From the NCBI GenBank assembly GCA_020536535.1, contig JAHLWZ010000815.1, positions 53,099 to 117,098 on the forward strand: a DNA stretch of 64,000 nucleotides. Reading direction: 5' to 3'. The notes beneath the pieces were generated by a model. It had not been told where the DNA came from. It did not search any database and was given only the letters and a program-made list of their open reading frames with translations. Below, one piece after another: positions 1-19,424 of this stretch; the first letter of the stretch is position 1, and each line of letters begins with the position of its first letter. Position numbers and translations under genes: made by a program. The DNA is from Pelomyxa schiedti (lineage: Eukaryota; Protista; Evosea).

Positions 1-904
1 AATCCATCGACATCGTCATCGTCATCATCAAAGAGTTTGTCTTTCGGTGGTGGTGACACAGACGTAGTCAATTTATTGTATGATGTTACAGCTCCTTCGT
101 CTTTAATTGAAGTTTCCACCTGGGTAGTACTTGCTGAAAGAGAACTCGTGGTGTTGCGTTTTGCGTTGCTGTGTGATATATCTGCACCAAAGAGTGGTGG
201 TGATGGTGTTAGTGTTGGTGCAACAACTGGTTTTTCAGAACTGGGACCTAAGAAAAGAAGTGAGTTGAGTACTTAAAATAGGTTAGTACTTGGTGAAGCG
301 GACTGTGTTAACCTCGATGTGCGCTTACTCCCAATAAATTTGGACAGAATCCCACCCCCATAGGAGGTAGAAGACCTCCCAGGAGATCCCGGCACAGTAA
401 TGCCAGGTGGGGATGGCGTTCTCTCCAGTATTCCCAGAGGAGTTTTCATAAATACCACAGGTTCATTCACTACAAGAGGATAGTTACTATAGAAGACGAT
501 TGACCCATTTATGATAAATTCCCATTGCAGAAAAGGAAACAAACCGACGCCACAGATGTACAGTTCAATGAAGCAAGCCTTGGGTCCCTGATTGCCCACC
601 AACTGTGGCCCAAAGTGACGCCTCAGAAGCCGCTCCCAAACATCAACCGCGTCGCACACTTCACGTAACACCTTGCTCGTCATTGATAACCTCACAACCT
701 CTTGCTTTTGTGTAAACAAATAACATCATTCGTGATATTACCACCAACAACAACAACAACAACAACAATAACAACAACAACTAGCAGACATTGCCACACA
801 CGAAACAGGAAAAACAAAAAAAAAAAGACCTTACCTTTGAAATCAAGAAATGGCACAAATGATGCCGCTACGCGCTTGACGCTTTCATCGTCAAGTGCAT
901 TCAT
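1..904 (-). CDS. F-box domain protein, multi-exon, runs off the window start
   Basis: Exon 904-835 (MNALDDESVKRVAASFVPFLDFK) splices via GT..AG to EVVRLSMTSKVLREVCDAVDVWERLLRRHF, an F-box pattern. A S/T/P-rich region follows. Confidence 0.65.
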
Positions 905-1175
905 CAAAGTTGTGTTGTTACAGTGATCTACACAGACCACCAATCAGTGTAAAAACTACTGGGGGAAAAAAAAGAACAGAAAAGACAAATAGATGAGAAG
1001 GAAATCTGTTGTCTAGTAGGGCAGAAAATTTTGATTGTGATGGCCCGATTTTTGGTGGCGAAATGGGTGTTTGGTTCGTTAGTGTTATGGATTGGTATGT
1101 GTTATGATAGTCGCGTGGTTGTGCTTTTGTTACTGGTAGCGTGATCTCAGTCTGATCAAGTCAAACCAAACCAAA

Positions 1176-4100
1176 TCAAGACTTCTTTCCAATCAGGGCA
1201 AAGAGGTCGTCAGTGTCGTCATCATCGCCACCAAATAGGCTCGTGCTCGTGTTCTTCTTTGCCGGCGCCGACGTTGTGGATTTAGTTGGTGCTGTTGTTG
1301 ATGATGATGATGATGTTGATGGTGGTGGTGTTGTCTTCTTCTGCGATGTTGATGACGAAGAAGGTGAGAGGAAGTCCGCACCATCGTCCTCATCGCCCTC
1401 GTCAAACAGTGAGGATGATGATGACTTCTTGGCGGCCTTGGTTGTTGATGATGATGAAGATGATGATGAAGAGGATGAGGTGGGGGGTGTGGCCGCGGGG
1501 GTGCGGGTGGGTTCAGGCTGGGCCTGCTTCTTGGCAGCCGGCTGTGTTGGTTGTGACGGGAGGGGGCTGTTGAGGATGGCGAAGAGGGGGTCCTCCGCCA
1601 CCGGTGTGGTTTTTGTGGATGACTTGGCCGCGGCCGCCCTCTCGGCCTTTTCCCTCTCCCTCTCCCGTTCCCTTTCCTTCTCCTTCTCGGCCGCTGCTCT
1701 CTCGGCCGCTGCCTTCTTCTCGGCCGCGAGCTTGTCCGCTGCCGCCTTCTCGGCTGCGGCTGCGGCCTTCCTTTCGGCCGCTTCGGCCGCGGCCTTCTCG
1801 GCGGCCCTCCTTTCCGCCGCGGCCAGCTTTTCGGCGGCGGCGGCTTTCTCGGCTGCCTTGGCTTTTTCAGCTGACGCAGACGCTTTGGGTTCGGGAACTG
1901 GGGGCTCTATAATCACGTCTTCGGCATCACTGCCGTCCTGTAACAGCAAGAGTTAGAGACGTGATGCTTGCGTTGGGGAGAACACACATGGCTCGGTGGT
2001 TGTGGTATTTTGTTTGTTTCTTCTTCCTCCTCCTCAGCGGCTTCTTCTTCGTCGTCCCATTTTTCTTTTCAATCTAAGAAACGCAAAAGTGGAAAAGGAA
2101 ATTTAAGGATACCTTCTGCCCCATCTTTCTCGGCTGTGTCTTCACCATCACCTTTCCCATCTTCCTCACCACCTTCCTCTGCCCCTTCCTCTCCTTCAGC
2201 TTCAGCTTCGCCTTCGGCTTCTTCTCCTTCTGCTTCTGCTTCACCTTCTTCTGCCTCACCTTCATCTCCCTCTTCTTCTCCTTCAGCTTCGGCTTCTCCT
2301 TCTGCATCGGGCTCTTTTCCTCCATCAGCCTCTGCTTCAGATCCCTCTGGATCAACTTCTGCCTCGGGTTCGTTTTCTTCAGACCCCTCTGGGTCAACTT
2401 CTGCCTCGGGCTCATTTTCTTCCGAACCCTCTGCTTCTACTTCTGACCCTTCTGCGTCAGGTTCAGGTTCTTCCTCCACTTCTGCTTCAGCATCTGCAGT
2501 ATCACCTTCTTCAGGCTCCTTTCCAGAAGCTTCACTTGCCTTAGACTTGTTTGCCTTCACATCTTCTCCTGGTGCTTTGTTTTCATCTTTCACCTCAGGT
2601 ACTTTCTTAACTGGTTCTGCACTCACCACTTTTTTACTTTTTTTACTGCTACTACTGCTGCTGCTGAGGCTCTTCTTCGAGGGTTCTGGGGCAGTTACAG
2701 TTTTGGTTGTGGGGGTGGTTGTGGTAGTTGTGGATGTGGATGTAGATATTCCCGTTGACTTGACAGGCGCTAACGATGAAGTGGTAGAGGGGGGTACTTT
2801 CATTTCCACAACCGGCTACATTTTGAACAGAAATTTTCAGTCACAAGACCTAATTAGATAATGTTTACCTTTGTTTCCTTATCATCATCCGAGGCTTCAT
2901 CCATGGTGAGAGTGAAGACAAAAAAGTATGTATGCTACCTTTATCTTCCTCTTCAGAAGAGGATGAAACCAAGAAGTCATCCAGCATGTTGGAAGATGTG
3001 TCAGAGATTTTTTCCTGGATAATGGACAATACAGTACTGCCAGTGAACGTTTCTTCCGGAGCGAACTCTGCACTGAGAACTCCATCAATTGCGTCAGTCA
3101 GCTTTGTGACACATAAATAGGACAAAATTATTTGGGGATCGTACCTCCTTAATAAAACGGCGAGTCTTAACTTTCATTCTTATCTTCATCCGGGTTTTGT
3201 CTTTCTTTGTCCTGTGATGGTCAGTACAGATATTTGAGAAGGCGGATCCTTACAGAGATGCAGAGACAGGTGGCACCGCTTTTCCAGCAACTGCTGAGAG
3301 AGAAGAAACCTTCTTCTCCAACTCGTCACGCAATGTCTTCTCTTTGGCAAGTTGCTTATCACATTCCTGGAAATGTTGAGGAAAATTTTTTGGCGGACAG
3401 ACCTACCAATTTGAGGGCTTCAAGTTTCTCCAAGTTCTCATGTGTAAGATCTTCCAACCTCTGCTTCCATTTGCGATCGTTTTCTGCAATAACTCGATCC
3501 ATATCCCCGCCCTTCTTCCTGTTGGATTTAACTAAACTTTTCTGAATCCTCACAACATACAATTTCTCAATCGTTTTTTCAAGCTTATCAATTTTTTCTT
3601 GTAGTTCATCTTTCTCTTGTTGTATAGCTTTTTCAGCCTACTCAAATTGGCGTTGGATGAAACAACAAAGACCCATACTTTTTTAATTGCTGAAGCCTGC
3701 TTTGCTTTTGTAGTTTCGAGATCTTTCTCAGCTTGAGTAAGCTTTTCGGCAGTTTCTTCATATAATTTTTCAAGGTCATCTCGTTTTCCTTTAATTTTCT
3801 TGATCATCTCAGCATCTGAACAGTGGCATTAAAACCCGACATTACAAAACTCAGTTTCACCTTCTTCCGCGTGCTGTTCAGCCCTCTGGGCTTTATATTC
3901 GAGTTTTGCCTTCTCATCAGTAAGGGATTCAATCAAACCCCTTGATGTTTTTAATTGTTCCTGAAGGGTCTGAAGTTCATCTTGCTTGGCACTCAATTCT
4001 CTTTTGTTTTGTTGGAGGAAGGAAAATAGCTTTGGAGCCATACGCTTTAATTTGTTGCATTTGTGTTCCAATTTTAGAACTAGCAAGATTAGCTGCAGCC

Positions 4101-7049: not shown

Positions 7050-8028
7050 ATGGCCACGGGCGGGAGCGGTGCTCTGTTCGACGTTTCTCACAGCTGCTCC
7101 GTTGCAGTTGCACTCGCGATCGCGGGCGGGTTTTGCCTCTTTGGCGGGATCGTCTCGCGTCGGCCGGCGGCGATCGCGCGCCGCGTCGTCGGCGTCGCGC
7201 TGGTGGCGAACGAGGTGACGATGCACGTGAGGAAGTACCACGAGGGCACGTGGTCCCTGACGACATGCCTGCCGTTTCATTTTTGCGATTACGCGATCTG
7301 GTGCAGCGTGTACGTTCTGCTAACCAACGGGCCATCCGTTGCGCGCCGTTTACTTTTCGGTGTGCTTTTTACTTTTGTTTTTTTTATCCCCTCTAAATAG
7401 AGCATACTTCAGTTCTTCAGTCCCAATCCGTCCTTTTATTGGGACTTGCTTTTGCGTTAAAAAAACAGGTGCTTGTGCTAATCATTTTGTTACAGAATTC
7501 GTTGCGCTTGTTGGCTCCCCTCTTGCATTCCATGGTCTTTTAACTCCCACACTACAACCTGGTCCTAGTGCCGCCTTTATGAACTTCGTCGTATGTCACG
7601 GCTTGGCTTTTGCAGCTCCGTACGTAGCGTTTTCGACAGATAGCACCCTGCACCTTACATCACGCCCGACATCAAAGCTTGCAGCTTCTCTTCGTGCAAC
7701 TGCAAGGCAAATTGGCTTTGGTAATGTTTTGCTGTTACTATCCTCAGTTGTGAACGCATTGGTTCCGGGAGCAAACTACATGTTTTCCTGTCACAAGCCC
7801 AACACCGCATCCATATTTGACCTCCTAGGACCTTGGCCCATTTACCTAGTTGTCATGGAACTAGTTCTTGTACCTCATACAGCATTTGTCCACTTTGTAT
7901 TTGTGGCACTAGGAGCCCTAAGAACCAGAGTTCAGAGGTGGTTTGTCTCCCGCCACCCAACCAACAACAACAATGGTGTTACACAAGCAACACCAAATAA
8001 GAAGAAAGCACTAAAAAAAAAGCATTAA
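7050..8028 (+). CDS. YwaF / TIGR02206 / TMEM164-family integral membrane protein, one intron (about 7361-7496)
   Basis: Motifs CLPFHFCD, LLTP, CHG and GANYMFSCHKPNTASIFDLLGPWPIY, plus several hydrophobic helices. Confidence 0.8.
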
Positions 8029-8102
8029 AAACCACACAAAACACGTGAAACAGCACTCGGCGAGGAACAGACCGAAAAAGAATTCCAAATTGCCAGCTCC
8101 GT

Positions 8103-8110
8103 ACCCACAA
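8103..8110 (+). promoter_or_regulatory. DUSE-type upstream element ACCCACAA of ncRNA-1
   Basis: Matches WCCCAYAA and starts 65 nt upstream of the first G of the terminal stem (8168). A second TCCCACA follows at 8116. Confidence 0.75.
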
Positions 8111-8167
8111 TTTAGTCCCACAGAAAACTTACGCCAAAAAAAGAACGAGTTCGGGCCCTAAAACTTT

Positions 8168-8761
8168 GAGGAGTGCTTGGCCCACTTAGGTGGAGCTCAA
8201 ATGCTGTCATGGTTCCCAAACAAATCTACTCATCAATCCTGCATTTACGTGGTCCCTTGCCCCCGCAGGATTGCTTCCACATGCCCAGAGGGTCAAACCT
8301 CTGGGACGGAGGAGATCCTCAGGGGAATAACGGGGGACTCCAGTCCAGAGGGGGGCGCCCTTTGGCCTGAACTCTACTTCCGTTTTCCCAGTGTCACAAG
8401 ACGAGGTCCAGAGACTCCGGGGGCTCCGGAGAGGGACTGGACCCCCCGGGGAGGATCAGCCGCACAGGGGGCGCCTGTGGGTCCCTCCCTGACCCCCTTG
8501 GCCAACTTTTCACTAGCCCTCAGATTCGCCGGAGACCCCCACCACAGGGCCTGCGGCGGCCCAGTCTGGGGGCTAGCCGGCCAAGGGGGGCCCCGAAAGA
8601 CACACCCCATATTCTAAAATGACTAATAGGCATGTGTGCCGCTCTTGGTCTCCCCCCAATCCCCGATGGGGTTGGGAGCGAGTCCAAAAGAAAGGGCGGC
8701 ACGCAGAGCCTAGAATCCCGTGTTGTTCAATCTCCGGTACTGGTGGGTTGGGCACTCCTCA
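8168..8761 (+). ncRNA. Unidentified structured ncRNA-1 (about 594 nt), telomerase-RNA-like candidate
   Basis: 20-bp terminal stem 8167-8186/8742-8761 with 5 G-U pairs, which is strand-specific. More than 10 further internal stems. DUSE-like element upstream and T10 downstream. Intergenic, with no credible ORF. Confidence 0.85.
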
Positions 8762-8771
8762 TTTTTTTTTT
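8762..8771 (+). terminator. Oligo-T (T10) Pol III-type terminator of ncRNA-1
   Basis: T run immediately after the 3' strand of the terminal stem. Confidence 0.7.
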
Positions 8772-8854
8772 GTTGGGTGTAGTGGTATTCCGCATTGGAA
8801 CACTAGTTGGGAGAATATGTGGATTGTGAAAGTGTTGTTGGATGTAAATACGAT

Positions 8855-10505
8855 TTAGCATTCATTGGGTTCCGTTTTTGTTGTGGGAGTGTTCTCTGTT
8901 TGTGGTGTGGAGCTCGATGAGGTTGTTGTATTTGTTGTATTGGAAATTGCCAATGGCACTGATTCTAGAGGAATTGGTGCATCAGTGGATGATTCTGCTT
9001 TTATTGGTGTGTTTGTGGATGGCTCTAAAACTGTATGGACTGGTGGTGCCTGTTTCTTTCTTTGGGGAATAACGGCCTCCAGGGCCTCTGCCCATGTATG
9101 ACCATTACATTTGAGAGCCAGTATCTCAAAAACTGTTTGTTGGCTTAATTTATGTTGCATGTGGGGATACTGTTTTCTTACCGTGGTTGATGGTCAGGAC
9201 TCGCCGGGAATTCTAAAATTCATTTAAAAGAGTAAAACTACATCAGTTACAGTACTATGGTGATATGTTCATCAATTGGAAGCCTTGCTGTACGCAGCCC
9301 AAGTTTGGTTGCTGCAGAATGAGTTATCCCTTTAAGCCTATTGTGGTCAACCAAAGCTCCTGAGATTTATGAGAGACAGGGGAGTCACAGATTGAATACC
9401 GATAACAAAAATATCCTTGGGATCAATTTCATTTAAGCAAGTTGTTGACTCAGAAGTAAGGTACACAATGTGTGCAGATTCCTGTTTAAACAGCTCAATG
9501 TCCATAAAATAGCGTTTGTCTACTACAACATCCTAGTGACTATTGAGATGTGGAGAGTGCCCAAATGTACCTTCCACTGTGATAGACCAGCCACTTTGCT
9601 CCACTGTGCTTCAAGCTTTCCCGTTGTACTTGTGAACCACAATTGAAAGCGTTTGGTCATTCTTTAAGTCGGGTTAATTTTTTAAAAAAGAAAAGTGGCT
9701 CAGACTTGTTGTTAATTCCGTAGCAGAGTCCTAGTTGGTTGACTGTTCCCCGAATTTCCTTTCTTGATTGAGTTTCAAATCAGCAAATACAGAAACTCTC
9801 AGGGGATAACCTTTTCTTGTGCTAGGTTTTCAAAGCTACCATCAAATATGATTGGGCCCATCAACGTGTAATCTGCATTCAATCTTCTCCTTTTGAAGAA
9901 ACCTGGCACTGTTGGATAAAAATAAAACCATGTTAGTTACATCATCAGTAGAAACGTCAATAAGGGATGATACAAGCCACAGTAGCTGTTTCCGCACCCG
10001 GCAAAGGAGCAGCAGAAGTTTCAGTTATAGGCTGTGGTGCACTGCAACTCGCACTTGTTGTGCTAGTGCTAGCGCTGTCACCAGTATTTTCTTGTTGTGC
10101 AACTGGGTGTCGCTGCTGCTGCTGTTGCTGTTGCTGTTGCTGTTGTTGTTGCTCGTGATACAACTTCCTTTTCTCCTTTAGCTTCGCCTTGAATTTTGCG
10201 CGCTGCTCCCTTCTGTTCTCGGCAATACGAAGTTCCTTCATCTCCTTCTTTCGCCGTTTGCGTTCCGCTCGCTCCTCCGGCGTTCGTTTCGGCTTTTCGC
10301 CCTCCGCGCTTGTTGTTGTTGTTGTAGTCGTCGTCGTCGTCGTCGGCGAAGCCGATGAGGTTGCAGTTTCGCTCACGGCCACCGCTCCCGATGTCTCGCT
10401 ATCGCGTGGTTTTTGTGTCGTTGCCGAGGCCTCGTCGATCTTGGGTGGGTCTCCACTCCCCTCGCCGCGTGCGGCCTGAGCCGCTGCAGCACCATCCCCT
10501 GACAT
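8855..10505 (-). CDS. TRM10: tRNA m1G9 methyltransferase Trm10, multi-exon
   Basis: Spliced exons give [40 protein letters not shown] and [19 protein letters not shown]. Confidence 0.92.
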
Positions 10506-18981: not shown

Positions 18982-19424
18982 GAGAAGTGGCATCAGTCAG
19001 TGATAGGACCACATAGTTGGTTTGACTGAGGTCCATAGCAGGGTTTAGGATGACCCCGGACCCCAGATGACCTCCGCAGACCCCGTCCCCCGCCCTTTTT
19101 TGTGGGCAGCCAGATGGAGGTGTTTCATTGTCTGTCCCCGCCGTTCGCCCCGAGAGGCGCCCCCCGGCCCCTGAGCCGGCGCCACGGCGAGCCAACCCTC
19201 CGCCACGCGGGCCCCCGGGAGGGCTCAATTCGCAGCGGCAAGCGGACTCGGCACGGCGCCCAGGGGGCGGGTGGCCGGCGGGGGCATGCCCCCTACGCTA
19301 CACTCGTGGACATGCCCGGACGAGGGCGGGACCCGCGGTATCATAGTTGGATGAGTAGTTCTGATGTCAGATATCGATGTAACTATGCCAGTATTGGAGC
19401 ACTGGGTGTATTGGGCCACTTCTC
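18982..19424 (-). ncRNA. Unidentified structured ncRNA-2 (443 nt), probable paralog of ncRNA-1
   Basis: Perfect 10-bp terminal stem GAGAAGTGGC/GCCACTTCTC. A 21-bp stem (19338-19318 with 19095-19074) has 5 G-U pairs on the minus strand. Several more stems, DUSE upstream and T7 downstream. Shares the 5' GAGRAGTG start and CTACTCATC with ncRNA-1. Confidence 0.85.

Follow-up and report, generated by a model that had tools for sequence, protein, structure and literature searches.

Does the interval 8103-8771 of a 64,000-nt stretch of Pelomyxa schiedti DNA (contig C815:53099-117098, hereafter the window) encode a free-standing RNA, and if so of what kind? An earlier note, made from the sequence alone, had proposed that a new or highly divergent non-coding RNA (ncRNA), ncRNA-1, is encoded here. 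The locus was examined within the assembly (52,367,397 bases, 5337 contigs; PMC8887013) and against RNA contigs from two single-cell RNA-seq runs of one P. schiedti sample. ncRNA-1 is a stand-alone, structured ncRNA gene on the plus strand with a Dictyostelium upstream sequence element (DUSE) promoter. It belongs to an expressed, structured and hitherto undescribed family of six RNA genes, known so far only in Pelomyxa, whose core resembles the panhandle of vault RNA. The proposal is thus supported; a highly divergent form of a known kind and a new family are equally likely.

Transcription of ncRNA-1

RNA contigs span ncRNA-1 from 8168 as far as 8748 or beyond. Joined immediately 5' of 8168 is a Smart-seq template-switch oligo, which fixes both the plus strand and the 5' end, at the position that had been expected. 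The 3' end was bracketed by the contigs between 8748 and 8786, a wider interval than that anticipated. Coverage was zero in the bin 8010-8120 and almost zero in 8787-8897, and the introns of the neighbouring genes were spliced out; the signal is therefore RNA, not DNA. Single-contig depth was ∼900-4000 for ncRNA-1 compared with 19 and 2-3 for the mRNAs on either side, a rough gauge by which ncRNA-1 is likely to be abundant in the cell. A variant at 90-95% identity was present in a sediment metatranscriptome. The gene comprises the following elements.

8103-8110, plus strand: DUSE-type upstream promoter element ACCCACAA, CCCACAA at -64
8168-8761, plus strand: ncRNA-1 body, ∼594 nt plus U tail (template-switch end, RNA contigs, fold z-score -6.2)
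8762-8771, plus strand: T10 run, probable RNA polymerase III (Pol III) terminator (from sequence; RNA depth ∼0 in 8787-8897)

The DUSE had been placed at -65 and was found one position closer; the T10 run lies where it was described. A CCCAYAA element was also located upstream of the RNase P, RNase MRP and signal recognition particle (SRP) RNA genes inspected. DUSE elements are used by Pol II and Pol III alike. All six family genes end in a T-run, and the family is probably transcribed by Pol III.

ncRNA-1 was captured nearly to its 3' end despite the oligo-dT priming of Smart-seq2 and the lack of a 3' A-run in the gene; part of the RNA may therefore be adenylated. At 8383, T was read as A in about half of RNA contig X3, in all of X4 and in the divergent sediment RNA X10, and the change was absent from contig X5, which is probably DNA. 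Either the substitution is allelic or it is the mark left in reverse transcription by a modified U.

Identification of a six-gene family

The family was assembled by comparing the two RNA genes of the window, which yielded a 22-nt motif and, with it, six genes in two subfamilies.

ncRNA-1, subfamily A: window 8168-8761, plus strand, 595 nt
Three paralogs, subfamily A: contigs C811, C854 and C1061, 517-531 nt each
ncRNA-2, subfamily B: 18982-19424, minus strand, 443 nt; same core, DUSE at -63, T7, z -5.0
C721 paralog, subfamily B: L019:1116-1546, 431 nt

A profile search returned the same six genes and one promoter-plus-24-nt fragment, with nothing more below E 0.06. All six genes (431-595 nt) carry a CCCAYAA DUSE at -63 or -64 and a terminal T-run. 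Folds of the paralogs gave z-scores of -5.0 to -9.3, the sense strand being the stronger wherever both strands were tested. The members are too diverged for BLAST, yet their pairs change in compensatory fashion. A protein-coding reading was rejected: the open reading frame that starts at the shared ATG is 138, 77, 38 and 115 codons long in four of the paralogs, and two have none.

The fragment (C815:37231-37357, minus strand; L002:1501-1627) is a 92% copy of the ncRNA-1 promoter and first 24 nt. A second DUSE block lies upstream of it, the core is absent, and after the copied segment come a short hairpin and a ∼110 bp inverted repeat. It sits just behind a gene resembling ribosomal protein S3, 24 kb from ncRNA-1. 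Blocks shared only within subfamily B, and not found in A, include the self-complementary GGGGGCAUGYCCCC and AACGGCGRGG..CAGACAAUG.

Fold and conserved core

The 599-nt stretch has a minimum free energy (MFE) of -298.6 kcal/mol. Its z-score against dinucleotide shuffles, a check that the earlier note had called for on both strands, is -6.2 on the plus strand and -4.8 on the minus strand. The nine stems listed in that note, with mismatches said to be mostly G-U, are all present at 8168-8760 (91 Watson-Crick, 11 G-U, 1 A-C and 1 other pair). The terminal stem contains the five G-U pairs ascribed to it, within 19 bp instead of 20. Its arms and those of the conserved core are as follows.

8168-8186, plus strand: outer terminal stem, 5' arm, paired with 8742-8760 (14 Watson-Crick and 5 G-U pairs)
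8193-8216, plus strand: core 5' arm, consisting of GAG helix, 7-nt loop CUCAAAU, 4-bp helix, 1-nt bulge, 5-bp helix CAUGG and UUCC
8718-8734, plus strand: core 3' arm, consisting of CCGUG, UUGU, 5-nt loop UCAAU and CUC
8742-8760, plus strand: outer terminal stem, 3' arm, paired with 8168-8186

The 5' motif GWG-CUCMAAU-RCWG-K-CAYRG-UU and the 3' motif CYRUG-UKGU-YCHRY-CWC occur in 6/6 genes. Together they form a 12-bp bulged end-to-end helix, with standard pairs in 71 of 72 cells (12 pairs in six genes). Between the subfamilies both sides of a pair have changed from A-U to U-A, A-U to U-G, G-C to A-U and C-G to U-A, and RNAalifold recovered the identical core unprompted from subfamily A. In the outer stem, 5/19 pairs are altered on both sides among the four related subfamily A genes, which carries modest weight. 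Covariation, also suggested as a check, was found among the six Pelomyxa paralogs; the sediment-strain variants (depth ∼4) gave no such support, about half of them breaking predicted pairs.

One of the long-range helices that had been proposed, 8325-8340/8713-8728, is feasible on paper. It is unlikely because the core occupies 8718-8734, its 3' arm pairing with 8193-8212 in all six genes, and because the 5' arm at 8325-8340 is not retained by the paralogs.

Linker and repeated hairpins

Inside the core, the middle region varies among the genes. In ncRNA-1 it contains the elements below.

8213-8240, plus strand: G-free single-stranded linker with CUACUC, a template-like stretch
8345-8365, plus strand: repeated hairpin 1, loop GGGCG, 8-bp stem
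8415-8431, plus strand: repeated hairpin 2, loop GGGCU, 6-bp stem
8463-8479, plus strand: repeated hairpin 3, loop GGGCG, 6-bp stem

CUAYYC is found in the linker of 6/6 genes, and the G-free run measures 25-31 nt in the four subfamily A genes. These four genes hold 15 hairpins with the pentaloop GGGMK, two closing G-C pairs and stems whose sequences differ and whose lengths range from 4 to 11 bp. Three or more copies arose in 0/2000 shuffles, and the remainder of the window yielded one in 125 kb. The sediment variant carries U8425G in hairpin 2, still within the GGGMK loop consensus.

Comparison with known RNA classes

No Rfam match in the window reached the gathering score, and none was obtained over 8103-8771 at E ≤ 10. 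The earlier note had looked in vain for RNase P/MRP and SRP RNA motifs, and ncRNA-1 is none of these RNAs: none of their models matched it, and ordinary RNase P and MRP genes (C676, 91 bits; C811, 81 bits) and six SRP genes lie elsewhere in the genome. C/D, H/ACA and U3 models gave no match over ncRNA-1. The RNase MRP gene (C811:110023-110515, minus strand; L005:1501-1993) is unusually long, ∼490 nt against a model of 266 positions. Three of the six SRP genes were inspected (L007, L008 and L009, with three further places); they have a near-identical S domain and diverged 5' and 3' ends.

Three paralogs carry UUAUC after the upper stem, which we take to resemble the Y RNA motif. The family is also like Y RNA and stem-bulge RNA (RF00019) in its external, type 3-like promoter, bulged terminal stem and variable loop with putative further protein sites. 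It differs in being five times longer, no sequence in the genome reached the RF00019 cut-off, and no Ro60 gene was found in the (incomplete) assembly, where the sole TROVE locus is of TEP1 type.

Comparison with vault RNA

The Rfam Vault consensus reads, on its 5' side, stem, loop CUUUA, helix GCUC, bulged A, helix GCGG, UUAC and UUCGA, and on its 3' side AC, CCGC, GGGC, loop GCUGU and stem. The family core follows the same order of blocks: stem, internal loop starting with CU, 4-bp helix, 5' bulge, G-ending helix and UUAC. With the blocks fixed, ncRNA-1 matched the consensus at 15/32 independent positions (shuffle p 0.005), the other A genes at 14-15/32 and both B genes at 19/32 (p 2e-5 or less); controls with a slid register gave 5-11/32. 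In one paralog GGUUACUUCGA stands precisely at the vault position. The family shares with vault RNA (RF00006; trypanosome TBsRNA-10) the T-run end, the multi-gene organisation and paired ends of the bulged vault layout, and differs in its longer outer stem and a structured payload with repeated hairpins. The Trypanosoma brucei vault RNA, as read from its primers (PMC12547018, Table S1), has CGGAUAC close to its 5' terminus and CCG close to its 3' terminus, and in trypanosomatids, where TEP1 is the sole TROVE protein, vault RNA was recognised through short similarities at its ends (PMC9326685).

Several observations weigh against a relationship with vault RNA. The comparison was chosen after the motif had suggested vault and Y RNA, it involved two free choices of register, and it rests on two subfamilies. 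A plain local alignment with the arms of vault RNA was not significant for ncRNA-1 (p 0.23); among the members, only the C721 gene reached significance (p 7e-4). The 5' internal loop has 7 nt where vault RNA has 5; the inner helix likewise differs, 5 bp against 4 bp. The genes are 431-595 nt long compared with 84-190 nt for vault RNAs, 190 nt being the longest described (PMC9326685). Vault RNAs use an internal box A and box B, a type 2 promoter (PMC7904556); no such boxes stand at the vault positions in the family, which has an external DUSE, and no exact box occurs in any member. A-like words with one mismatch are found at another position in subfamily A, and a B-like word with one mismatch near the 3' end of ncRNA-1 alone, ∼530 nt from the A-like word. 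The core lies 3.9 kcal/mol above the MFE fold in the ncRNA-1 copy; this cost suggests that a protein may hold the core fold there. Finally, no homolog outside Pelomyxa against which to gauge conservation was found in metagenome, viral and prokaryotic collections. A pattern scan of the metagenomes gave three matches, all lacking the 3' core, DUSE and T-run and taken as chance, and the viral and prokaryotic collections gave zero.

The 34-bit threshold of RF00006 was reached neither by ncRNA-1 nor by any sequence in the genome; the model has 99 positions and cannot span a 400-nt insert. No vault match was detected in the 1.5-kb flanks of MVP shoulder exons. Because length, A/B boxes and Rfam score all fall outside the vault class, the family is described here as vault-like and is not filed as a member of vault RNA.

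Proposed role

The genome contains three MVP genes and a single TROVE gene, of TEP1 type, on C807 at about 26.5-34.2 kb (L082:2047-9700). The exons of the latter read TROVE, DUF5920, DUF4062, STAND NTPase and WD40. DUF4062 has lately been reported as an NADase, and TEP1 has recently been shown to act as an NADase inside vaults (bioRxiv 10.64898/2026.05.01.722283). The chances are about even that the family constitutes a multi-gene, DUSE-driven scaffold that binds TEP1 and works in the manner of vault RNA and Y RNA.

In such a scaffold the TROVE domain of TEP1 would bind the core, and binding would stabilise the RNA and bring it into the MVP vault shell. At three times the length of the longest vault RNA described, the RNA would also be unusual in having an external promoter in place of the A/B boxes. 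The insert of 350-500 nt would be the payload, its 3-4 identical G-rich pentaloop hairpins binding several copies of one protein that the RNA would tether or store at the vault. A comparable arrangement is found in Y RNAs, where a Ro60 handle is joined to variable loops (PMC10498592). Dictyostelium vaults enclose whole ribosomes (PMC13100048), and the size of an RNA is therefore no bar to vault loading.

A further step is put forward tentatively and is, on present evidence, somewhat doubtful: that these are giant amoebozoan vault-type RNAs, in which a TEP1-binding panhandle carries exchangeable payload domains, each with arrays of identical hairpins that bind protein, and which choose vault cargo or control the TEP1 NADase. 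What vaults and vault RNA do has been an open question for a long time. Vault RNAs have been described from animals and trypanosomatids, and none from Amoebozoa was found in the searchable literature, although Dictyostelium is a main model for vaults (PMC13100048). If the proposal is true, the separable core and repeated payload hairpins of such a long RNA would supply a motif with which to search Amoebozoa for vault RNAs, and the idea that vault RNA is a cargo tether would become directly testable. Should the vault link fail, a new, expressed and structured RNA family is still described.

Alternative explanations

The strongest alternative, which has a substantial minority chance of being correct, is a lineage-specific scaffold or protein-sponge RNA with no link to TROVE, built on the plan of the dictyostelid Class I RNAs; its core and G-rich loops would be sites for other proteins. 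It accommodates the absence of an Rfam match, the vault class features that fail and the 15 hairpins with one loop, three copies of which appeared in none of the 2000 shuffles. The Class I RNAs themselves have a DUSE ∼60 nt upstream, are abundant and encoded by several genes, and combine joined ends with a conserved motif near the 5' stem and a variable middle (PMC7919456). They are, however, only 42-65 nt long, with a 6-bp stem and an 11-nt motif, and are reported only from Dictyostelia (PMC7919456); with these differences in length and stem and no Rfam match, membership of Class I was rejected. A scaffold of this kind also leaves the block-by-block likeness to the vault panhandle unexplained.

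It is highly improbable that the genes are telomerase RNA paralogs, with the G-free linker as template and TEP1 binding them as it does telomerase RNA. The likeness is to the plant and ciliate telomerase RNAs with type 3 promoters: an upstream element, a closing stem and a C/A-rich unpaired stretch, to which short direct repeats (periods 12, 8 and 5) may be added, and plant telomerase RNA paralogs with differing templates exist (PMC12133305). Against this, the linkers of ncRNA-1 and ncRNA-2 would each template a 12-nt repeat, both of which are missing from the assembly, and each paralog would template another repeat. By eye, no pseudoknot common to both subfamilies was seen, and the contig depths given above, although rough, suggest a bulk RNA. 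No combination of a DUSE with a TTAGGG template was found; five of the six genes hold no such template, and a TTTAGGG-type word occurs only in an ncRNA-2 hairpin. TTAGGG runs in the assembly amounted to two short internal ones, fewer than in the reversed control, and so carry no information on this point.

A role as a guide in the processing of rRNA or mRNA, similar to U3 or snR30 and with pairing through the CUAYYC linker, is likewise highly improbable. Preservation of a short motif in an unpaired region of 6/6 genes would fit such a role, but the motif spans 6-9 nt and differs between paralogs, and the guide RNA models gave no match.

Least probable of all is a short interspersed element (SINE)-like or other selfish repeat, although the copies are dispersed and a promoter-plus-24-nt fragment lies on the same contig. 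There are only six full copies, and every one of them has a DUSE of its own upstream, an element that retroposition would not copy. There is no internal promoter at the vault positions, the target-site duplications for which a check had been advised are absent (longest shared word 4-6 nt), and divergence too great for BLAST is combined with compensatory pairs.

Neighbouring genes

ncRNA-1 is flanked by a TMEM164-family gene ending at 8028 and by a minus-strand gene ending near 8855. A search for homologs through synteny, run exon by exon with the joined protein left out, matched the upstream TMEM164 exon only to itself. For the minus-strand gene (window 8855-9480), the last exon alone gave no Pfam match; its last exons presumably encode the C-terminal part of a Trm10 tRNA methyltransferase, extended by an extra tail.
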